Below are positions 45,580 through 63,900 of a stretch of 64,000 nucleotides of DNA, one piece after another. This DNA comes from Guillardia theta CCMP2712 (lineage: Eukaryota; Protista; Cryptophyta). Position numbers and translations under genes: made by a program. Below the pieces are notes generated by a model that was not told where the DNA came from, did not search any database, and was given only the letters and a program-made list of their open reading frames with translations. The stretch is taken from positions 64,100-128,099 of the forward strand of contig NW_005434575.1 of the NCBI RefSeq assembly GCF_000315625.1. The letters are read 5' to 3'. Position 1 is the stretch's first letter. Each line of letters opens with the position of its first letter.

Positions 45580-48500
45580 ATGTGGATCTGGGGATCAGGT
45601 TCTGGCAAGGGCGGAGGGGAAGGGGGAGAAGGAGCAAAATCTGGAGACAAAGTGGAAGGAGGAGACAAGAAGACCAAGGAAGATCACTTCAGGCTGGTGC
45701 TGAGAGACCATGCTGACCGAGGCCTCAACTTCACTTGGCGCACAAGCGACCTCGAGAACGCCAGGAAGTCGCTGCATGCCAAACTTGCAAGCCTGGTGAC
45801 CTGCCCTCCGGAAGCATCGAGTCCCCTCGGGGCGGATAGCAGTGAGCGAAGAAATGCAGACAGCCCGAGCATGGAGCTTCGGGGTCAAGAGGAGCGGAGG
45901 GTTCCAGTGGAGGCCTATCAGAGTGAGGCAGATCTCCTCAGCAACGTGGTGATGGTCAAGATAGAGAAAGTTGCAACGAGCGACAAGAGTCGTGTGATCA
46001 AGTCGCTGCCTCTTGACACCGCGAGCTTTGACAGCATCACCAGTTTGCGGGTTCTGGGAGCTGAGGTCGACCTGGAGAGCAACGTGAAGCCCTTGGTGCG
46101 GAGCTCGCTGCAGGTTCTCGGCCTCTCGGGGCAGAAGGCTGCCAACGACAAGCTGCTTGACTTCATTCAGCCCGCACTCTCTCCTTCCCTCACCTCCCTC
46201 TCCCTCCGGAGGAATCAGCTCAAGTCCTTCCCCGCCTCCTCCTTCAGCTGCCTGGCGAACCTGCGCGAGCTGGACCTGAGCGACAACTTTCTGCTGGACA
46301 TCTCCCCCTCCCTCTTCGTCCAGTGCCCCCGGCTGGAGTCGCTGAACCTGCAGAACAACCCGCGGCTGACGGTGAGGGAGCTCGACTTCCGCGCATGCAA
46401 GCTGCGGACGCTGCTGCTGGGGCTGATCCAGCTGGACTACCTGCCGAGCCTGGCGCACCTCTCGACCCTGACGGAGCTCTCGCTGTTCTCGCTCTACATC
46501 AAGGCCAGGGCGCCGAGGCGGGACCCCCGTCGCTTCTTCGAGGCTCTTGCGGTGCACGTGGAGCTGCTCAAGGCAGGATCGAGTGCCATCAAGCTCTTCC
46601 CCTCTAGCAAGGAGGCTCGGACCGAGCTGCGCTCCTCCCTCGTCCCCGTCCTGCGCTCCTCCTCCTCCTGGCATGCTCTGCTAGGGGCGCTGCTGGCCTG
46701 CATTGCAAACGAGAAGATGTACCGGGCCCTCATCTCCTCCGACATCGCCGGCACCTCCGGCCTGCATCACCTGCTGGCCATGTGCGAGGGCTCGGAGCCG
46801 CTGGCCCTGGACGCGTGTGTAGCCGTGAGCAAGCTGTGCGACCATGAGGAGCAGGCGATGGAGCTGCTGGAGCTCCAGATCGTCGAGCGATTCTGTGAGG
46901 TGCTGTCCTCCGAGCACAACTCCGTCGCCCTCAAGCTGTTCGTCCTCCTCACCCTCCGGTCCATGGCAGGATGCAGCCAGCAGGTGTGCGGGGCGATGCT
47001 GGCGGACAGCAGAGAGACGAGCAGGAGGCTGCGGTACGAGCACTACGACATGGGGATCAGCTTGCGGTACGACATCGTGTCTCAGACGCTACTCAAGATG
47101 CTCAAGGGGAACGAGGCCGATCGATCCCTTGAGCGCGAGGCCCTCGGCCTGCTGGGCGACCTCGCGTTCCACTCCTCCCACCGCCGGCTCCTGCTGGGCG
47201 ACGCGCGGATGCTCGCGACCGTTCGATCCCTGACGGAGACGGTGAAGGACAAGGTGTATCAGTCTCCTTGCAAGGAGAGAGGAGGAAAGGTGATCCTCCC
47301 CTCCTCCTCCTCCTCCTCCTCCTCCCCTCGTGGGCTGCTCAAGGACTCGTTCGCTTCTTCCCCGTCCAAGGACTTGGGTGACGCCGACGGCGTGCGGTTC
47401 TACGAGGAAGCGCCGAGCTCTGTGCTCAGCCCGAGAATCTTCAGCCCGATCCCAGCAGAGAAGGAGAAGCACCGGACGCTCTTGCACGGGGAGGGGATGA
47501 GAATGGAGGCGCCCAGCGAGGAGGCGGTCCTAGCGGCAGCTCTGCGAGTGCTGGCGATCCTGGGAGACAACCAGACGCTGAGCAGAGCGACGAGGCTGTC
47601 TCCCATCGTCGAGCACCGCGGGCTGCGGATCCTCTCGGTTGACGGAGGAGGAGTGAAGGGGATCGCAAGCATCCGCATCCTCCAGCGCCTCGAGCGAGCA
47701 TGCGGGCAGCCGCTGTACTCGCTCTTCGACCTGGTGGCTGGCACGAGCGCCGGGGGGATTATCGCATCTGCCATGGGCAACAAGCTCAACATGACGGAAG
47801 CTGAGAAGATCTACCGCGCCATCACTCGCAAGGCCTTCTCCCTCCCCCGCGACAAGGACAAGCTCAACAACTCCCAGGGAGCGCAGCCTGCGGGAGCAGG
47901 AGGAGCAGGAGGACCAGCGGCAGCAGCTGGGGCAGGAGGGGCAGGAGGGATCCAGAATGTGCTGGTGAGGGAGGAGCTGCTGAAGGAAGAGCTGCAGGGA
48001 GGGGAGGGGAGCACGTCGTGGTGGACGAAGCTCGTTCAGAGCGGGTCGAGCATGAGGAGGGTGCTGTTCCAGGGGGCCAAGTACGACGCGGGGCCGCTGA
48101 TGCAGGTGCTGCAATCTCAGTTCGGGGAGGCAGTAAGCCGCAGGATGATTGAGGCGAGTCTGGACCCGCACGCGTGCAAGACAGCAGTAGTGTCCACCCT
48201 CGTGTCCGAGCGGCCGATCCGGCCGTACGTGTTCCGCTCCTACCAGCTGCCGCCGGGGATGAAGGAGAGCTTTCCCGGTCGGTCGAGCTCGACGTGGCTG
48301 GAGGCGATGAGAGCGTCGTCGGCTGCCCCCTACTTCTTCGACGAGTTTGTGTCCGACGGGGAGAGGCTGCAGGATGGCGCGATCGTGACCAACAACCCGG
48401 CGGTGGTGGCGGTACACGAGGCGCAGCGACTGTGGCCGGGGAGAGCGATGGAGCTGATGGTGTCGGTGGGGACGGGGAAGGGGCCGCCGGTGAGGAGGGA

Positions 48501-51500
48501 GGTGAAGCCCAGCAGCAGCGGGATCGGGATGATGATGGAGACGTTCGGAGAGCTCATGGTTGAGGCGGCGACGAGCTCGGAGAGGGTGGCAGAGGCGTTC
48601 GAGGTTCTCTCCCCCATGATCCCCGGCATGTCGATCTTCCGGCTGCAGGTGGAGGACGAGCGATGCAACGTGGAGATCGACGACATCAAGCAGGAGACGC
48701 TGATGGGGATCGAGCAGGCGGCTGAAGAGTTCATGGAGGACAACATCGCTACCATGGAGGAGATAGCCTGCATCCTCCGCTCCTGCGCTCCTTCCATGGC
48801 TGGCCATCATCAGGAGGACGAGGACGAGGACGAGGACGAGAAGGAGGAAGGGGGAGGAGGAGGGAGAAAGAGGAAGGGGCCTTCGCCTATCAATGACTCC
48901 TCCTTCATGCTGCGGGAGGTTCTGAACGAGCGGCCGCTGGGCAAGCATGGGATAGGATCGAAGCTGCGGGCTCTCTTCTTAGAGTCGCTGCTGCCATGCG
49001 AGGAGGGGCAGGGACGGGACATGGTTGAGATGTTTGCCAGGATGGAGGTCCCCTCCCAGCTCCTGTCCTTCCATGAGGGGGTCCTCACCAGGACCTGCAA
49101 GGCCGTCTCCTCCTCCTCCTCTGACTTGAGCGTCAGCGGCGAGCAGGAGCTCGATATCTCCTTCCTCCTCCGCGTCCTCCACCGCTCCACCGCCAACGTC
49201 GTTCAGATCGAATGTGAGAGGAACATTCGCTCCTTCCACCCCCTCCTCTCCCTCGTCCTCCTCTTCCTCGTCCTCGACCTCCCACCAACTCTCCCTCTCC
49301 GTCCCTCTTTCCTCCCTACACTCTCCCTCCTCTTCCTCTCTGGTGACTCTGCTCTGATAGGCGACACCCTAAAGTCCGGCGGAGATCTCATCCTGTCCTG
49401 GTGCTCGGAGCAGGTCGCCCCTTGAAGTCAGCAAGAGGATGCTGACGCTGCCGCAGGTTCTTCTGTCCATCGAGGACGCCATGTCCATCCTGCACTCCAG
49501 CTCCTCCCATGCCGACCAGGCCATCTCGCTCATGGCAGAGGGGAGGGAAGAGGAGGATGAAGAGGAGGAGGTGGACAACGGAGGGGAGGGAGGTGGAGAG
49601 GGTGTCCCAGCAGTGGAAGTGAGAGGGTGCGAGGTGGAAGAAGCGAACGGGATTTACCTGCAGACGCCAGAGGAGCACGGGAGGAGGAGAATCTACCGGC
49701 ACACCTCCGGGCTCTTCCTCCTCCTCTTCCACGAGCAGGCGGACAGAAGGCTGAGGGGAAACGTGTGGATGGTCAAACCCTGCGAGGCAGGAGAGAAGTA
49801 CCTTGGCTGTCTCCGCTCCTCCCCCTCCCGCTCCTCCTTCTCCCCCCACCAGCCGCGAGCATGGCAGAGCTTCAACGGCCTGCGGTTTGTGGACGACACG
49901 GGGGGGAGGGTGAGGGTGAGTGCGATTGAGTATGAAGATGCGGTGGATGCGAGTCACGAAGAAGAAGCGACGGGAGAGGAGGAAGACAACAAGGAGGAGG
50001 ACAAGGAGCAGGGAGAGGAGGAGGAGGGGAAGGAGGAGGGAACAAAGGGGGCAGTTGAAATGGACGACATAAGGGCTCAGGCAGCACAACAAGGAGAGAC
50101 GGAGGAGGATCAGGAGGGTCTAAAGGGGACAGAAACGGAGCAGCAGCAGCAGCAGCAGCAGCATGTCTGCACAAGTGATGATGAAGGTATTGCTCGCTTG
50201 CTCCTTTCGCCTGCTGATATGCTGAATGACTTCCCAGCTCCTCGACCCGTTGGTAGAGAAGAGCAGGAGCAGGAGCAGGAGCAGGAGAAGAAAGAGGAGG
50301 CGCAGGGAGAGAGAGAGGTTGCTGAGGAGGTAACGGAGGAGGAACAGGCAGTGGAGGAGGTGGGCAGAGAAAGGATGCCAACGGTTTGTGCGGGTGGCGA
50401 TGGAGAGGGAGCTGTATTTGACATGCAGAAAGAGCAGCAAGAGCGTGAAAGAAAAGAGGAGGAGAGGCGGGAGGAAGACAGGGAGGAGGAGGAGGACGAC
50501 GACGACGATTGGGAGGAAGACAGGAAGGAGGGGAAGGAGGAGGAAGAGGAGGAAGACAGGACAGTAGACGAGGAAGAGGAGGAGCGAGGGGTTCAGCAGA
50601 AGTTGGAGGAAAGTTGTTTTCCTTCTCTCGCTGGGACTCGCGGGTGCTCGCGTGAGGTTGACCTGACGGACGTGAAGAAGCTGATCGAGGTGTTGGAGGC
50701 GAACAGGTGAGGCAGGGAGAGGAAAGGAGGAGAAAGAAGTGAAAGAGGAAGAGACAGAGGTGGAAGAGGTGGTTTTGGTGGTGATTTGAGGTGCAGGACG
50801 GTCCATACGTCTCCGGTAGAGAAATGGATCTTCCGAGGCTGCCAAATGAAACTGGAGGAGGAGGAGGGGGAAGGAGAAGCAGGAGCAGGAGCAGGCGGGC
50901 GAGTCCTGCATGCTAACGACCGCATTTTCCTCTTCTCCAAGTACAGGGCGAGACAGATTGCTTCATGGGAGAGTGTGCTGGAAGCTAGCTCGGGGAGGAA
51001 GAGCCCTTTCCATGGTTGCCCTCTCTCCCTCCTCTCCCCCTCCCCCCACTTCCTCCTCCTCCTCCTCCTCCTCCTCCTTTCCTTGTCTCTGCTCGACCTC
51101 GACCTCTCCTACCCTTTCTCCTTCGTCTTCCCTTCTTGCCTTCTTTCAACCTCGACCTCCTCCTTCCTCGTTCATCCTTTCCTTAGTCTCTGTTCGCTCT
51201 CCTCGTTTCTCTCCCTCCTCTCTATCAAGTCGATCTCCTTCCCTGTACCTCCCTCCCTCGCTCCCTCTTTTCTTAGCACAACCCCTGACTCTCCTCTCAG
51301 ACAAGGTGGTGGTACTGCGGCACGCGATTCCCTTCAGGAAGGCGAGGATGCTAATGTCTGCGGGGGCCGCGTCCGTCGTCATGCCGGCTCGTCCGCTCCC
51401 ACCCTGCGAGAGGATGGAGAAGCTGCGAGTCTTCTACGCGTCTCTGCTGCAGGTCCTGAGGGGGCAGCGAGGGAGGAGGGGGGGGGAGATGGGAGGACGG

Positions 51501-55711: not shown

Positions 55712-56150
55712 TCACCATCTTGTGCTGGCTCTCTGTCGCTGCCCTGCAGCATCGTAGAGGATAAACTCTCTGTAATTGTGCAGCCAGGCGGACGGGTGAG
55801 TGTTGCTGGTGACTCCGATGACGGAGTCGTGAGGACCGGAGTCAGCGCTGGCAAGAGGAAGCCTCGTGTTGGGCATCGGCTGCTCGGCCTCGTAGGGCAT
55901 TCCCAGCACAGCTCGGATGAGGAACTTGATGGAGCAGATGCCGCGGGAGTCAGGCCGACAGTACTCGTCGCTCTTGCTGGAGTTCTCAGCGAGGTAGATG
56001 CCAGCTCCGAACAACTTAGCCTCCCATGCTGCAGACTCGCTCGTCGAGCCCGCAGGAGAGGATGGCGTCAACGACGTTATGCCGAGTGCCATGGAAGAGG
56101 TACACCTCGTTGCTCGTCTTGTCCTGCAGCAGCTCCCGCTTCATCCAGTC
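55712..56150 (-). pseudogene. Disrupted PARP (ADP-ribosyltransferase) catalytic domain
   Basis: NEVYLFHGT..GLDERVCSMGG, 4-nt insertion with stop, then LFGAGIYLAENSSKSDEY..HDSV..YREFILYD. Confidence 0.85.
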
Positions 56151-56753
56151 TTACCACCCCGGAGGACAGAAGCATCTTCTGCTGACTACTCAGCTCAGTC
56201 TCTCTCTCGCTGATCTCCTCCTTACTAACTTGCTGACCAGCACGTCTCGAGCCGCCTCGTCCGCAAGCACTAGCAAGGAAGAAGCTCTGTCATCATCTCG
56301 AGTCCGATCAATGATCATCCTCTACGAGTACATGACCGGCGGTCTACTTGAACTCATGCCCGAGGTTCCGAAGTTCTTTGAACTCGGAAAGTTTTTATTA
56401 AAAATTGAAGGGATTTTTTCACGTCCGCCCCAGAGAGGTTTGTTTCTCATGTGAGAGGCAGCAAACCTTGATTAGAGCTGATAACTATGGCAGGAATACA
56501 GCGCAGGGAAAGCACGGAAAGCAATGTAGGAGGAAGAGAGATAGGAGAGGAGAGCAGGCAAAGACATGATATGGCCTTGATCTCGAAAGTCTCTAGTTCC
56601 TATCATGAAAGTGCACTTGTTGAGTATGTACAGAAGTCGAAGCATAGAGTTCCATGAAACCTCTAATGAAAGATTTTACTTGCTTCACCTGGAAGATTTT
56701 ACTAGTGAACTAGAAAAAATCTTTCATTTCACCTAAGACTCTCACTTGATCTT

Positions 56754-59700
56754 ATGTCTCCTCACAGATCGTTCGGCATGTCGGATATCGTTGTTATTTT
56801 GATTCGATCGAACCTCGTCAACTTGTGGCAGGAGGCGCATGCTGTGCCCAACAATCAGAAGGAGCTTCGAGAACTCGCGACGGAGGTGAAGGAGATGGTC
56901 GACCTTGTACTTGATCGAGACCATCAGCAACTCGACGAGGAGCGAAAGTCTCTCCTTGACTCGGCTCTCAACCATCTCTGCTGCCTCCTGTCCTCCATAC
57001 GTCACTTCATAAGGAAGAAAGGCGAGGGCCGATCTCTCGACCCTTCTCCTCGTGATCGTCTCATGGGCAGCGCACGCAAGCTCGAGGCTGAGCTGGCAGG
57101 CAAGAGGTCGGAAGTGTTCTCAGCTGTGTATAACCTCAGCTGTGCTCTTGCTGGGCATGTTGGGGAGTTAGAAAGTAACCCCACGTACAGCAAGATGAAA
57201 GCAGCCGCAGATTGGGTGTCGTGCGATGCTTCAGACGTCAGCCAGGCAGAGCAGCGACCGTGGGCTCTCGACCCTTGGAAGCTTGAGGTGGAGACTACTG
57301 GACGAGGGAAACCCAAGAGGATTCTCGGCACAGGAGCCTTCACGGTCGTGTACCAGGCGACGTATGAAGGGGCTGAGGTGGTCGTGAAGGAGCCGCATGA
57401 CACTCAAGTGATCGATGGCGATGAGTCGACGCGCAAGGCGTTCATGAAGGAGGCGATGCTGCTCTTCAGCATGTCTCACCTCAACGTCAGTAACCTGGTC
57501 GGCGCCATCCTGTCGGACGAGCACGGAGACTCTTGCTACCTGCTGGTGACGGAGGCGCTGCTTCAGCCTCTCGATCGCTTCATCGAGCTGATTCTTAGAC
57601 CTGCCGGTGCGAACGAGCAGCAGGCCAGAGGTCGCGCGATCATGCAGGGGCTGGCGGACGGGCTGACGTACCTGCACGCGCATGAGATCGTTCACGGGGA
57701 CCTGCAGCCTAAGAACGTCAAGGTGGAGGCCAACGACGTCGCGAAGCTCGTGGGGTTCGAGCTCGTGAAAGTGAAGCAGCTGGTCGCCTCGTCGTCAGAG
57801 TCCGTGAAGCAGGGACATGTGTGCTGGATGTCTCCTGAACAGAAGAGAGGAGGGAGCGCGACGTTGGCGTCGGACGTGTACTCGCTCGGCCTTGTCATGT
57901 CGTACGTGATGACGCGCGAGAAGCTGGCGGCTAGCGTGGAGAAACAGGAGGAGGGATCGAAAGAGCTCCAAGGCGAGCAAGTGTGGAAGCAACTCATCCT
58001 GTGCTGCCTCGATAACGAGGCGTCGAAAAGGCCGACAGCAGCTGCTGTATCGATCAGTTTGTTGGCAGATCGCAATCTGCTGTTGGAAGCAAAGGGAATG
58101 AAGGGTATTCTGTCTTGTTATGCTGTTGATATACTGACTTTGCATGAAGTCAAGATCGGAAGCCAAAAAAATCAAAATATGCAAAATGATTCCATCGACA
58201 CTCGGAAGGGGTATGGTGCTGCATCACATAAGAACAATGCCATCATGTTCGCTAAATGGGGAGAGATGAGATGCTTTTCAGGGGATACAAGTAAAGTAAA
58301 AAGAGTGTTAATCTCGCCGGATGCGACCTTGATCACGGCACAGACAGATGACAGTGCAACGAGGATATTGGAAATCAAGAGCGGGAAGAAGATCAGCTCG
58401 TTCCATGGATCACACTACTTCACAATGACATCACTTGCATCTGCAGCAGAAGAGTCCAATGAAGGAATTGTGACATCATGGGACTTGACCAGCGAGAAAG
58501 AGATCTGGCGCGTCAAGCAAAGCAGCAGCATCACATGTCTGATGATTGCACGTATGAGCAGGTCTGGAAGATACTACATCATCTCTGGGTCATCGGAGGG
58601 TACGGTGAGAGCAGGGGAGCTACTGAACAGGGGTGAAGTCTGGTGCTCGTCGGAGAAGAGCGACAGCATCACATGTCTCACGGCAGTGTATGACAATTTG
58701 ACTGATCAAACAGTGTCAGGGTCATCAGATGGTGCTGTGAGGGCATGGGAGCTAAGCAGCGGGAAGGAGGTCTGGTGCTTCAAGGAAGACAGCAGCAGCA
58801 TCACATGCCTGATGGCAGCGTCAAGGTCTTTCGAGAGGATGAATCAACACTTAATAGCCTCGGGGTCATCGGAGGGTACGGTGAGGGTGCTGGAGCTAAG
58901 CAGCGGGAAGCAGGTCTGGTGCTTCAAGGAAGACAGCAGCATCACATGCCTCACGGCAGCGAACTCGAATCAGGGCAGTGGGACACCTCAATACTACATC
59001 ATCTCGGGGTCATCGGAGGGTACTGTGAGGGCATGGGAGCTAAGCAGCGGGAAGGAGGTCTGGTGCTTCAAGGAAGACAGCAGCAGCATCACATGCCTGA
59101 TGGCAGCGAACTATTTGAATGGGTCTCAAACACACTACATCATCTCGGGGTCATCGGAGGGTACGGTGAGGGCATGGGAGCTAAGCAGCGGGAAGGTCTG
59201 GTGCTTCAAGGAAGACTGCAGCAGCATCACATGCCTGACGAAATGGATATTCAATTTCAATGGGACGAATCAATGCTGCATCATCTCGGGGTCATCGGAG
59301 GGTACTGTAAGGGTGCTGTGGCAAACCAGCGGGGCAGAGATCTCGTGCTTCAAGAAAAATAGCGGCGGCATCACATTCCTGACAGCATGGACCTGGTATG
59401 TTAGTGATACGGAGTATTACAACATTGTCTTGGCGGGGTCATCGGAGGGTACGGTGAGAGCATGGGAGCTAAAGAGCAAGAAGGAGATCTGGTGCTCTGA
59501 GCAAAATAGTGGCGACATGTGTCTGGCGACCATAAGCCTATGTACTGGTGGTAGGACGCAGCAACCCTACCTTTTCTCAGGATCATCGGAGGGTACTTTG
59601 AGAGCATGGGAAATACGCTGTGAGAAGGAGATCGGATATTTAAGAGAAGATACAAGTGGCGTAACAAGTGTGGTATGGACGGGGGATGGTAGGATGATGG

Positions 59701-60506
59701 TAGCTGCAGGGTCATCGAAGGGCAAAGTGAGAGCATGGGAGGGAGACAGCGGGAAGGAGATCGGATGCTTCGAGGGACATACGGGAGTTCTTACGATCGT
59801 GTCTTGGACGAGGGATGGAAAGATGATCGCAGCTGGATCATCGGACGGCTCTGTGAGGGTGTGGGAGACAAGCAGCGGGAAGGAGTTGAGATGCTTTCAA
59901 GATGTTAAGAGACGATTCTCACACCTCGCTTGGTCCAAGGATGGTAGTATGCTTGCGTCCAAGTTATCAAACGGCACCGCAAGGGTATGGGAGATCAGCA
60001 GCGGTGAGGAGATGAGATATTCTGCAAAGAATTCTGTGATTGTTACAAGCGTGTCATGGTCGGAGGACAGCAGGTTCATCGCCGCAGGGTCAAAAGATTG
60101 GACAGTGAGAGTGTGGGAGGTAAGAAGCAGCGAGCAGGTGCAATGCTTCAAGGGTCACGGGGAGCAAGCGACCTGTGTGGTGTGGTCGCGAGACGGAAGT
60201 ATGCTCGCGTCAGGGTCAGAGGACATGACGGCGAGGGTGTGGGAGATGAGCAGCGGGAGGAGGGTGAGCTGCTGTACGGGACACAAAGGACGGGTGACAT
60301 GCGTTGCCTGGTCGGAGAACGGGAGATTTCTTGCTTCAGGCTCGTCTGACTGCACGGTGAGGGTATGGGAGGCGAGGAGCGGCAAGGAGATCAGATGCTT
60401 CCGAGGACACACTGACTGTATCACGAGTGTGGTGTGGTCGGAGGACGGGAGCATGCTTGTGTCGGGGTCAGATGACACCACTGTGTTGGTGTGGGGAAAC
60501 TTTTGA
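56754..60506 (+). CDS. MLKL-like helical bundle + pseudokinase + WD40 repeat protein
   Basis: 1250-aa ORF; kinase fold GTGAF, VVVK, HGDLQPKN, KLVGFEL, SDVYSLG; about 15-17 WD40 repeats. Confidence 0.85.
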   Translation: MSPHRSFGMSDIVVILIRSNLVNLWQEAHAVPNNQKELRELATEVKEMVDLVLDRDHQQLDEERKSLLDSALNHLCCLLSSIRHFIRKKGEGRSLDPSPRDRLMGSARKLEAELAGKRSEVFSAVYNLSCALAGHVGELESNPTYSKMKAAADWVSCDASDVSQAEQRPWALDPWKLEVETTGRGKPKRILGTGAFTVVYQATYEGAEVVVKEPHDTQVIDGDESTRKAFMKEAMLLFSMSHLNVSNLVGAILSDEHGDSCYLLVTEALLQPLDRFIELILRPAGANEQQARGRAIMQGLADGLTYLHAHEIVHGDLQPKNVKVEANDVAKLVGFELVKVKQLVASSSESVKQGHVCWMSPEQKRGGSATLASDVYSLGLVMSYVMTREKLAASVEKQEEGSKELQGEQVWKQLILCCLDNEASKRPTAAAVSISLLADRNLLLEAKGMKGILSCYAVDILTLHEVKIGSQKNQNMQNDSIDTRKGYGAASHKNNAIMFAKWGEMRCFSGDTSKVKRVLISPDATLITAQTDDSATRILEIKSGKKISSFHGSHYFTMTSLASAAEESNEGIVTSWDLTSEKEIWRVKQSSSITCLMIARMSRSGRYYIISGSSEGTVRAGELLNRGEVWCSSEKSDSITCLTAVYDNLTDQTVSGSSDGAVRAWELSSGKEVWCFKEDSSSITCLMAASRSFERMNQHLIASGSSEGTVRVLELSSGKQVWCFKEDSSITCLTAANSNQGSGTPQYYIISGSSEGTVRAWELSSGKEVWCFKEDSSSITCLMAANYLNGSQTHYIISGSSEGTVRAWELSSGKVWCFKEDCSSITCLTKWIFNFNGTNQCCIISGSSEGTVRVLWQTSGAEISCFKKNSGGITFLTAWTWYVSDTEYYNIVLAGSSEGTVRAWELKSKKEIWCSEQNSGDMCLATISLCTGGRTQQPYLFSGSSEGTLRAWEIRCEKEIGYLREDTSGVTSVVWTGDGRMMVAAGSSKGKVRAWEGDSGKEIGCFEGHTGVLTIVSWTRDGKMIAAGSSDGSVRVWETSSGKELRCFQDVKRRFSHLAWSKDGSMLASKLSNGTARVWEISSGEEMRYSAKNSVIVTSVSWSEDSRFIAAGSKDWTVRVWEVRSSEQVQCFKGHGEQATCVVWSRDGSMLASGSEDMTARVWEMSSGRRVSCCTGHKGRVTCVAWSENGRFLASGSSDCTVRVWEARSGKEIRCFRGHTDCITSVVWSEDGSMLVSGSDDTTVLVWGNF

Positions 60507-60910
60507 TGCCATTCGGAAGTTCAAGTTGATCAGACTCATGAGGACGATAGTATCTATGATGTGTTGTCACTAAACTAGCATACTGCCTACAACCTTCCGA
60601 ACCGTGACTATCATGAGGCCCGACTCGGATGATCGAGTCGATCATTACTCAGTGGACTGTGACATATACACGATCATTCACTAAGTCATGCCGCCGCCAG
60701 CACTCTGAGAGAATGTAACTGTATAGTAACGGATCTCAATTAAAGGCGCCGACTGCACTCAGTGATTCCACTTGCGCGCCGCGCTCCGGAGCGGCCTCCG
60801 AACTCCGGCAGGCGGCCCGGAGCCCGGAGTCGGACTGGCCCGGATCATCGCCCGGAACTCCGGGGTGACACGAGGGGGGATGCGGGGATCACTCCAGGGA
60901 TACTCGAGGA

Positions 60911-63900
60911 ATGGCGGAGCTCGAGGTGGACGCGCAGGACGTTGTGCGACTTATGCTGCAGTTCTGCAAGGAGAATGGACTGAAGGTGAGAGATAAGAGA
61001 CGATCATGCTGATCCCTCCCTCCCTCCCTCCCTCCCTCCCTCCCCTCCCTCCCTCCCTCCCTCCNNNNNNNNNNNNNNNNNNNNNNNNNNNNNNNNNNNN
61101 NNNNNNNNNNNNNNNNNNNNNNNNNNNNNNNNNNNNNNNNNNNNNNNNNNNNNNNNNNNNNNNNAATGGCAGGTACATGATATGGTTGGCGATATTCAGA
61201 ATTTATAAGAAGATAATCGTTGGTATCAGATGCTGCTTCAGGACGTGTCGATATGAGATTCCTTTCTACGTTGATAATCACGGCCCTCCCTCCCTCCCTC
61301 CCCTCCCTCCCCTCCTTCCCTCCTTCCTCCCCTCCTCTCTCACACCCTCCTCCGCACACCACAATAGCCACCAACTCCTCATTCCTCCACTTCTTCCATT
61401 ACCACCCTCACCGCCTCGTTCACACTCTTCCTCTTCTCCTCTCTCCCTTGCTTAACAACATATTGTGCTTGTTGCTTTCAGGCGCTACCTACTACTAAAT
61501 CCTATCTTGATTGACTTTTGGATGTGCAGGAGACGATGAAAGCTCTCCAGGACGAGTCTAAAGTAGCGCTCAACACCGTCGAGAGCGTTGAAGGCTTCTT
61601 AGGAGACATCCAGTCAGGCAACTGGGACCTCGTGCTCGCTGCGTGCCAGAACCTGCAGCTGCCGGTGAAGAAGATGATGGACCTCCACGAGCAGATCGCG
61701 ATGGAGCTGCTGGAGCTGAGGGAGATGGACGTGGCACGAGCGATGCTGAGACAGTCTGAGTGCTTGCTCATCATGAAACGAGAGGAGCCCAACAGGTACA
61801 TCAAGCTCGAGTCCCTCTGCGCCAGCCCCACCTGGGATCCTAGAGATGCATACGAAGGAGGAGCGACGAAGGAATCGAGGAGGTCGGAGATAGCTAAGTC
61901 TTTCTCCACGGAGATCAGCGTCGTCCCTCCTTCCCGCCTCCTCGTCCTCTTGGGTCAGGCGTTGAAGTGGCAGCAGCACCAGGGCATGCTTCCTCCCGGC
62001 TCTCAGTTCGACATCTTCAAGGGAACGACGGCGACGAAGCCGGACGAGTACGACGAGTACCCGACGAGGAACACTCACTCCATCAAGTTCGGCAAGAAGA
62101 CGCATGCTGAATGCGCAGCGTTCTCACCCAACGGGCAGTACCTTGTGTCCGGAAGTCTGGACGGGTTTGTGGAGGTGTGGGACCACGAGACGGGGAAGTT
62201 GAGAAAGGATCTCAAGTATCAAGCCAACGACGAGCTCATGATGCATGAAGATGCCGTCCTCTCCATCGCGTGGTCGAAAGACAGTGAGCTGCTGGCCACT
62301 GGAGATCAGTCGGGGAAGATCAAGGTAAGTGTGCACCTCTGCTCTGCTCTGCTCTGCTCTGCTCTGCTCTGCTCTTTCCTCTCTCCTCTCCTCTTTTTTC
62401 GAGTCCTCCTTTTGGCTCCTCCCCTCTTCCTCTCCTCTCCACTAAATTTCTCCACGCTTCTCCGCCCCTGCTGTCCTCCCCAGTCCTCTCCTCCTCTCCT
62501 CTCCTCTCGTGCCAGCGCCTGATGAAACCTCTCAGGTGTGGAAGGTGAAGACAGGGCAGTGCGTCCGCAAGTTCGAGAAGGCTCACTCGCAAGGGATCAC
62601 CTGCCTCTGCTTCTCTCGCGACGGCACTCAGATCTGCAGCTCCTCCTACGACGCCTGCATGAGAATGCACGGGCTGAAGGTGAGCCATCGCTGCGCCTCC
62701 TCGGGGCCTCACAGTGGACGGCAGTCAGGGAAGATGCTGAAGGAGATGCGAGGACACACCTCTTACATCAACCACTGCGTCTACTCCATCGACGGGCTGC
62801 GCATCATCAGCTCGGGCAGCGATGGCTACGTCAAGGTGAGACGGGAGTGCTGGCCCGATGTGTCTGCTGCTGCTACTATTGTTGTTGTGGTTGTGGTGAT
62901 GTTGCTTACAAACTACTTGAGATGCTGACAACTCGACGTGCTGAGAGAGAGCTGTTGTGCAGGTCTGGGACCCCAAGAGCGGAGAGTGCATTTACAGCTT
63001 CAGGCCGAACCCAGCTGGGCAGGTGAGAGCGAGGAGGGGAGAGAGAGAGGAGTCACGCAGCATCGGCAGGAGATTGCAGTGAACTGCTGCTGCTGCATCC
63101 CCAAGACCGACAACCTCATCGTCTGCGACCGGAGCTCGACCGCCTACGTCGTAACCATGGCGGGACAGGTGAAGTTCGTGTAGCTGTTGGAGAGGAGGCT
63201 GAGGACGAGAGAAAGCAAGGATCAAGGGGAGGGAGGGGAGGGGAGGGGAGGGGAGGGGAGGGGAGGGAAGAGGAAAGAGAAAACTAACAGAGGAGGAGGC
63301 GTAGTTAATTTTCTTTTCTCTCGCGCTCTTCTTCTCCATCCTCATTTGTACTCTGTCAGGTTGTGAAGACGATTTCTTCCGGCAAGAAGGTCTGCTGCCC
63401 TGTTGTCTTGTGAAGTTTGACATGTCGGGCAGACTGGAGGAGACTTCTTGAACGCGTGCGTGAGTAGGATGGGATCATGGTTGTATTGCCTCGCTGAAGA
63501 TCAGGTGAGGCAGAGGAGATGAAGGATGATGGAAGAGATAGGAATGATGGGGAAGAGATGAATGAGTTGAAGTTTATGTTGATGAGAGTGATGTTTGTTG
63601 AGACTCAGGTCTTTTTCTTTACATTGGTGATGTTGATGATGATGCTCATGGTGGTGGTGGTGGTGATGATGATGATGAAATGGAAGTTGGGGCGATGGAG
63701 CTGATGACAATTCTTGTTCAGAACATGTACGTCTTCAACATTCAAGATGGAAAACTGGAGCAGATCACCAAGTGAGGGATCGACTTGACGTCTTATGGTT
63801 GTGTTGACTTGCTGCCAGGGTACACGAGCGCGAGCCGATCGGTCTCTGCCACCACCCCCATCGCAACGTGATGGCGACATTTGCGGATGATGGGCAGCTG

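Follow-up and report, generated by a model that had tools for sequence, protein, structure and literature searches.

An MLKL-like layout of helical bundle, predicted pseudokinase and WD40 array in the cryptophyte alga Guillardia theta

Toward the end of a 64,000-nucleotide stretch of the Guillardia theta CCMP2712 genome (contig NW_005434575.1; hereafter the window, whose numbering we use) lies a gene for a 1235-amino-acid (aa) protein in which an N-terminal helical bundle, a brace-like segment and a kinase fold with altered catalytic motifs follow one another in the order known from MLKL and are continued by a long WD40 array. The open reading frame (ORF) runs uninterrupted for 1250 codons on the forward strand (56754..60506) from an ATG with in-frame stops just 5' of it. 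The 1235-aa length is that of the translation after removal of a 45-nucleotide (nt) intron, which is in frame and free of stops, so that the genomic ORF reads through it and splicing drops 15 aa of the linker between kinase and WD40 array. Contigs assembled from public runs cover the gene and end at its limits, with zero cover at 56164-56491 and beyond 60592, and one of them carries the spliced joint (Table 1). That these runs are RNA is a guess, but gene-bounded cover together with a spliced joint argues that the contigs are transcripts, and the ORF of a paralogue on contig C112 is interrupted at the very position of this intron. The window gene is a real, expressed gene.

Table 1. Positions of the gene's parts, its relatives and its surroundings (window numbering unless a contig is named)
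Feature	Position	Strand	Remarks
Transcribed region	56525..60587	+	contigs of public runs, 3 studies; cover ends at both limits
Coding exon 1	56754..58104	+	aa 1-450 and first base of next codon; joint in transcript contig
Four-helix bundle, MLKL_N-like	56778..57149	+	aa 9-132; predicted helices 9-30, 35-53, 62-90, 104-132 (AlphaFold2)
Brace-like helices and linker	57159..57254	+	aa 136-167, with DWVSCDASD; predicted helices 136-140, 143-157/160, 162-167 (AlphaFold2)
Kinase-fold domain, predicted pseudokinase, tyrosine kinase-like (TKL)/RAF-like	57309..58079	+	aa 186-442
Catalytic loop HGDLQPKN	57693..57716	+	aa 314-321; HRD Arg to Gly, loop Lys to Gln; Asp316 and Asn321 kept
GFE at DFG position	57753..57761	+	aa 334-336; Mg-binding Asp to Gly
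Ser-rich SSSES	57789..57803	+	aa 346-350, activation loop; candidate phospho-switch
Intron, 45 nt, GT..AG	58105..58149	+	joint 58103/58149 (cut +1) in one transcript contig
Coding exon 2	58150..60506	+	linker, WD40 array, stop codon
WD40 array	58251..60503	+	about 16 repeats; Pfam WD40/beta-propeller families from about aa 500; repeat parsing
Three family genes	window (C99), C112, C29		HGD/GFE; about 16 WD40
Four family genes	C23:60325-76400		15-kb cluster; HRD with DFG or DLG; 7-blade WD40 exon
Two family genes	C44, C51		HRD or HKD with DFG; LRRK2-type ARM repeats
C29 paralogue	C29:203466-207197		one of the three HGD/GFE genes
C29 PARP partner ORF	C29:209976-213320		1115 aa
PARP catalytic-domain relic	55752-56157	-	85-93% protein identity to aa 968-1100 of the C29 partner
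LRR-patatin ORF	45580-49425	+	1281 aa
Downstream gene, first exon	61518-62522	+
Assembly gap	61065-61164		run of 100 N
MLKL_N domains outside the family	C451:1624-1938, C93:18653-18982, C341:2609-2890		36.7-46.2 bits

The kinase fold matches Pfam PF07714 at aa 188-432 (E 1e-28), and the solved kinase folds nearest to it are those of CRAF and BRAF (Z 26, 24-25% identity). HMMER alignments to EGFR and HCK place HGD on HRD and GFE on DFG, in agreement with the paralogue alignment. An earlier note on this DNA, made from the sequence alone, had reported GFE in place of DFG, and these alignments bear it out; the other strings that it quoted are also found in the protein (LWQEAHAV... at aa 24-45, SALNHLCC... 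at aa 70-88, DWVSCDASD at aa 153-161 or 57210-57236, and HGDLQPKN). Besides the Mg-binding Asp, the HRD Arg and the catalytic-loop Lys, replaced as listed in Table 1, the domain has lost the third and last Gly of the Gly-loop, and it retains the SPE motif. As a pseudokinase is usually defined by loss of at least one of the VAIK Lys, the HRD Asp and the DFG Asp (PMC13519141), a domain without the DFG Asp is a predicted pseudokinase. In its model only aa 338-353, in the activation loop, fall below a predicted local distance difference test (pLDDT) score of 50.

The N-terminal domain was modeled with AlphaFold2 from alignments of 22-24 family members (aa 1-442, pLDDT 84.6 and predicted template modeling score 0.86; aa 1-173, pLDDT 81.5). 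In a fold search that was independent of Foldseek and compared the N-domain model with 48,161 representative chains, the human MLKL N-domain 6ux8_A ranked first (Z 10.7, root-mean-square deviation [rmsd] 3.5, 128 residues) and mouse MLKL 4btf_A third (Z 10.1). Consistent with this, VIA-align of the Foldseek candidates returned the MLKL executioner domain or Arabidopsis AtMLKL2 in seven of the eight top matches (Z 10.0-11.5, 123-152 residues), the best being the MLKL executioner domain 6zvo_B (Z 11.5, rmsd 3.5, 128 aa), with AtMLKL2 6lba at Z 10.8 over 152 residues, and Foldseek itself gave high probability (0.89-0.97) to MLKL entries only, at template modeling scores of 0.47-0.60. When the model of N-domain plus kinase was searched, full-length mouse MLKL 4btf was the only top match to span all 453 columns, its domains being differently oriented (rmsd 17.8 over the 453 columns). 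The predicted helices of the brace region lie between bundle and kinase N-lobe, and the alignment to the MLKL chain extends to about chain residue 137, into the first brace helix. The models thus predict, at the N-terminus, a four-helix bundle of MLKL/HeLo fold, with the caveat that designed bundles also reach Z of about 10, and a brace of MLKL type joining it to the kinase-like domain.

Relatives in the family carry this assignment to the level of sequence. Pfam MLKL_N (PF22215) is matched by 8 of the 24 family N-domains, with member P0005 alone above the curated cut-off (28.9 bits against 27; E 9e-7, profile positions 9-126 of 142) and P0007 below it (22.6 bits), and P0018 approaches RPW8 (27.3 bits, cut-off 30.4). 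The family N-domains are homologous to one another at E 1e-19 to 1e-6 and share a conserved RGKPK junction. A language-model feature search (Atlas), which we use as a lead only, put MLKL_N clusters first (score 0.83), and a cluster bearing PF17111 is among those listed by the Atlas fold search. The best match of the N-domain profile among PDB sequences, the Prp19 coiled coil (E 0.0012), was judged a chance coiled-coil match. By transitive homology and fold, the N-domain is very probably a bundle of the MLKL_N/HeLo class. The genome also has three genes with bona fide Pfam MLKL_N domains above the cut-off, on contigs C451, C93 and C341, where the domain comes after a region of tandem 28-aa repeats, is not fused to a kinase and has EF-hand-like and Gly-rich, collagen-like exons nearby; a protein search with this MLKL_N exon, made to obtain a better MLKL_N profile, gave just two matches, both from Hanusia.

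In the WD40 array, seven repeats in the middle are built on one fixed scaffold (L-S..WC...ITCL ... SGSSEGTVR..E) that encloses a loop varying in sequence and in length, and the underlying DNA is a tandem repeat with a 144-nt period at 58719-59387 (4.7 copies, 78% matches; Tandem Repeats Finder). The helical HET-S and HELLP bundles of fungi are membrane-targeting effectors, and in the fungal HET-E/NWD receptors the tandem WD40 repeats are closely alike but for variable positions. The algal protein resembles these systems in pairing a helical bundle, its putative effector, with WD40 repeats of variable positions, and by analogy its loops may bind ligands as the recognition arrays of the fungal WD40 receptors do. 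It differs from fungal NACHT-WD40 receptors in having a pseudokinase where their nucleoside triphosphatase (NTPase) would be: among the Pfam families shown there is no match to a central NACHT or NB-ARC NTPase, and the roughly 60 residues between the kinase end (about aa 442) and the WD40 start (about aa 500) leave no room for one.

A search of the genome (87.1 Mb, 669 contigs) found nine genes with this N-domain, which fall into three groups by kinase motifs and C-terminal repeats (Table 1). The C23 cluster comprises four bundle-kinase-WD40 genes, including a near-identical pair that lies head-to-head, with DLG in three of the four and HRDITPQN in one; as in the C112 paralogue, the C23 ORFs break at an intron and then continue into WD40. 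The paralogue on C29 has lost the beta3 Lys as well (VAVLE), and its roughly nine nearly identical 48-aa WD40 repeats suggest that the repeats were recently amplified or have evolved in concert. When 1.84 billion representative proteins were searched with a profile, just 18 more members came to light; cryptophyte transcriptomes and marine metagenome contigs are their sources, with the nearest homologues coming from Hanusia phi and Proteomonas sulcata. Every outside member that covers the catalytic and activation-loop region has HRD and DFG, and some have ARM-like tails. As seen so far, this is a small family of cryptophytes and marine metagenome contigs, whose older members, with the same bundle, a canonical HRD/DFG kinase and either WD40 or ARM repeats, are probably active kinases.

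In a maximum-likelihood tree, the GFE genes form a clade (100/100) that is sister to the C23 cluster (99/98) and nested among DFG-bearing members. Because the GFE clade lies inside HRD/DFG relatives, its GFE is derived, and convergent with that of MLKL. Within the clade, the ratio of nonsynonymous to synonymous divergence (dN/dS) of the kinase domain is 0.19-0.24 at synonymous divergence (dS) of 0.20-0.97. GFE and HGD common to paralogues under purifying selection argue against recent decay, and by sequence comparison the change, which is neither accidental nor confined to one gene, is old and has been maintained. The survey of paralogues for GFE that the earlier note had proposed, with DFG in all of them as the mark of recent decay, accordingly came out in its favor, the two closest paralogues (C112 and C29) keeping GFE under purifying selection. 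In the best explanation, which taken as a whole we hold to be somewhat probable, the kinase of the three-gene clade turned into a pseudokinase as the array expanded from 7 to about 16 WD40 repeats.

Comparison with known systems sets the limits of the likeness. In animal MLKL (4btf, 6zvo, 2msv) as in the algal protein, bundle and brace precede a pseudokinase of TKL type in which GFE occupies the DFG position and a Gly follows the HRD His. Unlike MLKL, however, the algal protein keeps the catalytic Asp (HGD versus HGK), ends in an array of about 16 WD40 repeats, absent from MLKL, and has a kinase that descends from cryptophyte HRD/DFG paralogues and is structurally closer to RAF. The plant MLKLs (AtMLKL1-3; 6ka4, 6lba) likewise combine a HeLo-type bundle, a multi-helix brace and a pseudokinase in one chain. 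They have a role in immunity and a serine-rich C-terminal region in which no domain is known (10.1101/681015), whereas the algal C-terminus is a WD40 array with no serine-rich extension. No sequence-level link to plant MLKLs was found either in the profile search described above or in a word search with the family profile (E up to 10). Close counterparts are also the cryptophyte paralogues with a four-helix bundle, a kinase and WD40 or ARM repeats (C23, C44, C51; Proteomonas, Hanusia, marine metagenomes), which have a homologous kinase domain and share the order of parts but have HRD (or HKD) and DFG (or DLG), and 7 WD40 blades or ARM repeats against about 16 blades. The window protein is MLKL-like in layout and is not an MLKL orthologue; its pseudokinase, which nests among HRD/DFG cryptophyte paralogues, does not share descent with the MLKL lineage, and its nearest solved folds are RAF and not MLKL.

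The earlier note had described an MLKL-like executioner of bundle, brace and GFE pseudokinase fused directly to a sensor. This one-chain architecture, with a putative executioner and a putative sensor, is supported by fold, by Pfam matches of relatives and by language-model features, and two of its elements stand in part. For an MLKL-type N-domain, the top solved folds and the MLKL_N matches of relatives speak in favor, while the domain itself stays below every Pfam threshold and its Z scores are in the range of unrelated bundles. For likeness to the MLKL pseudokinase, GFE holds, but as convergence and not shared ancestry, and with the catalytic Asp retained.

We lean modestly toward reading the product as a 1235-aa cytosolic protein whose MLKL_N-type bundle, brace, impaired kinase fold and roughly 16-blade WD40 array would work as an MLKL-like switch, the bundle being the part that may kill and the array the part that may sense. 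In the resting state, brace and pseudokinase would keep the bundle inactive. A trigger would then flip the pseudokinase switch, and it might be a ligand bound by the variable loops of the WD40 array, an active paralogue or some other kinase that phosphorylates the Ser-rich activation loop, or the two together; the freed bundle would oligomerize and attack a membrane, and the outcome could be cell death or a defense response, for instance against viruses. The stronger form of this proposal, in which the protein is a self-contained sensor, switch and executioner, with WD40 repeats that detect a threat, an independently evolved pseudokinase in place of the NTPase of an NLR and an MLKL-type bundle that kills, is a tentative one that we hold with distinctly less confidence.

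Several observations weigh against the switch reading. The first concern the N-domain. The window's own N-domain (aa 1-185) matched no Pfam family at E up to 10. Canonical MLKL was not reached by profile searches of the 1.84 billion representative proteins and of PDB sequences or by the family-profile word search (E up to 10), which returned family members only and no canonical MLKL_N. When the family was compared by hhalign with the bona fide MLKL_N genes of this genome, with Hanusia added, the probability was 3.6% (E 0.012), a match in register but not strong enough to be counted, with a thin target profile, and the Foldseek E-values for MLKL entries are weak (0.2-1.3). Z scores of 10-11.5 can be reached by unrelated helical bundles, designed bundles scoring 9.5-10.2 in the same list, so the fold by itself is no proof. 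A search of the genome for the RHIM domain (PF12721) of a RIPK3-type partner found no match and is uninformative, as the controls of the search were also silent.

A second set of observations concerns the kinase. The beta3 Lys212, alphaC Glu233, Asp316 and Asn321 are retained, which makes residual or atypical catalysis possible. The protein might then be an active atypical kinase that binds metal through Glu336 or another acidic residue and recruits substrates via WD40, a reading to which the strong purifying selection on the domain and the low activity shown by some "pseudokinases" (PMC13519141) also lend weight. We nevertheless consider it improbable, since the DFG Asp is one of the three residues by whose loss pseudokinases are defined, Gln stands in place of the catalytic-loop Lys, the Gly-loop lacks its third Gly, and the C29 paralogue is still under selection after losing its beta3 Lys. 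The same GFE, moreover, accompanies HGK in human MLKL, and this GFE form is inactive (PMC5104457).

Expression bears on a further alternative, that of a decaying duplicate without a function of its own that recently lost its kinase motifs. The only run recorded as RNA, sampled at 6%, yielded one read, the gene belongs to a multigene family, and just upstream of it lies a truncated relic of a neighboring gene. Against such decay stand an intact frame of 3.7 kb, splicing and contig cover in three studies, and the presence of GFE/HGD in three paralogues at dN/dS of about 0.2 over dS of up to 0.97; this explanation is already largely refuted, and we give it very little credence.

The last points against the switch reading concern what the bundle does. 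MLKL_N-like bundles are also found in non-killing proteins, they head ARM-repeat proteins and further plant proteins whose annotation is not lethal, and immunity conferred by plant MLKL can be uncoupled from cell death, plant MLKLs also binding microtubules (10.1101/681015). The protein could accordingly be a non-lytic signaling scaffold, in which the bundle serves only for oligomerization or for association with membrane or cytoskeleton and pseudokinase and WD40 array assemble a signaling complex in the manner of other WD40 proteins with a kinase or pseudokinase; the LRRK2-type ARM repeats of paralogues and the RAF-like kinase fold would suit such a role. On the other side, the best structural and hidden Markov model affinities of the bundle are specific to executioner-type bundles (MLKL_N, RPW8), the order of bundle, brace and pseudokinase matches MLKL, and variable WD40 loops with gene-family expansion resemble recognition and not housekeeping. 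We regard a scaffold as possible, though on the doubtful side, and keep the MLKL-like switch as our working interpretation.

The surroundings of the gene add several observations. The minus-strand relic just upstream is that of a PARP catalytic domain, with its first 967 codons gone, and the depth of 231 at 56000-56163 does not stem from this locus but from transcripts of paralogous PARP genes that match it over 31 nt. The corresponding intact ORF on C29 has a coiled-coil-kinase-coiled-coil-PARP arrangement and stands head-to-head with the C29 GFE paralogue; this protein could be a functional neighbor of the MLKL-like genes. Upstream of the window gene, however, there is no head-to-head kinase gene in the window, only the relic and an esterase-like ORF, and for the C112 paralogue no PARP-type neighbor was present within the approximately 10 kb upstream or 8.5 kb downstream that were fetched. 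About 7 kb upstream of the window gene, another ORF joins LRR_8 (E 3e-13) to a patatin-like phospholipase (E 8e-24), a layout of repeats plus effector. An assembly gap begins 560 bases 3' of the stop codon, and the first exon of the next gene downstream encodes a helical region at the N-terminus and then WD40 repeats, in an ORF that runs into an intron; that gene looks ordinary and unrelated.

It is established that animals and plants have MLKL-type executioners and that fungi have related bundles. No necroptosis homologues were reported by a survey of 67 protists (PMC7539657), our literature search turned up no account of proteins like these in algae, and according to a 2026 review the active-kinase ancestor of the MLKL lineage is not known (PMC13519141). 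Here, one genome holds the layout of bundle, brace and kinase in both active-motif and pseudokinase forms, and the pseudokinase has converged on the GFE of MLKL while fused to a repeat array of recognition type. If the stronger form of the proposal is true, regulated necrosis in the style of MLKL would have been invented a second time, by convergence, and the active bundle-kinase paralogues would display the "active ancestor" state that is not known for the MLKL lineage. How a kinase becomes a death switch, and whether unicellular phototrophs use MLKL-like suicide or defense, for example against viruses, thereby become questions that can be tested in a culturable alga.

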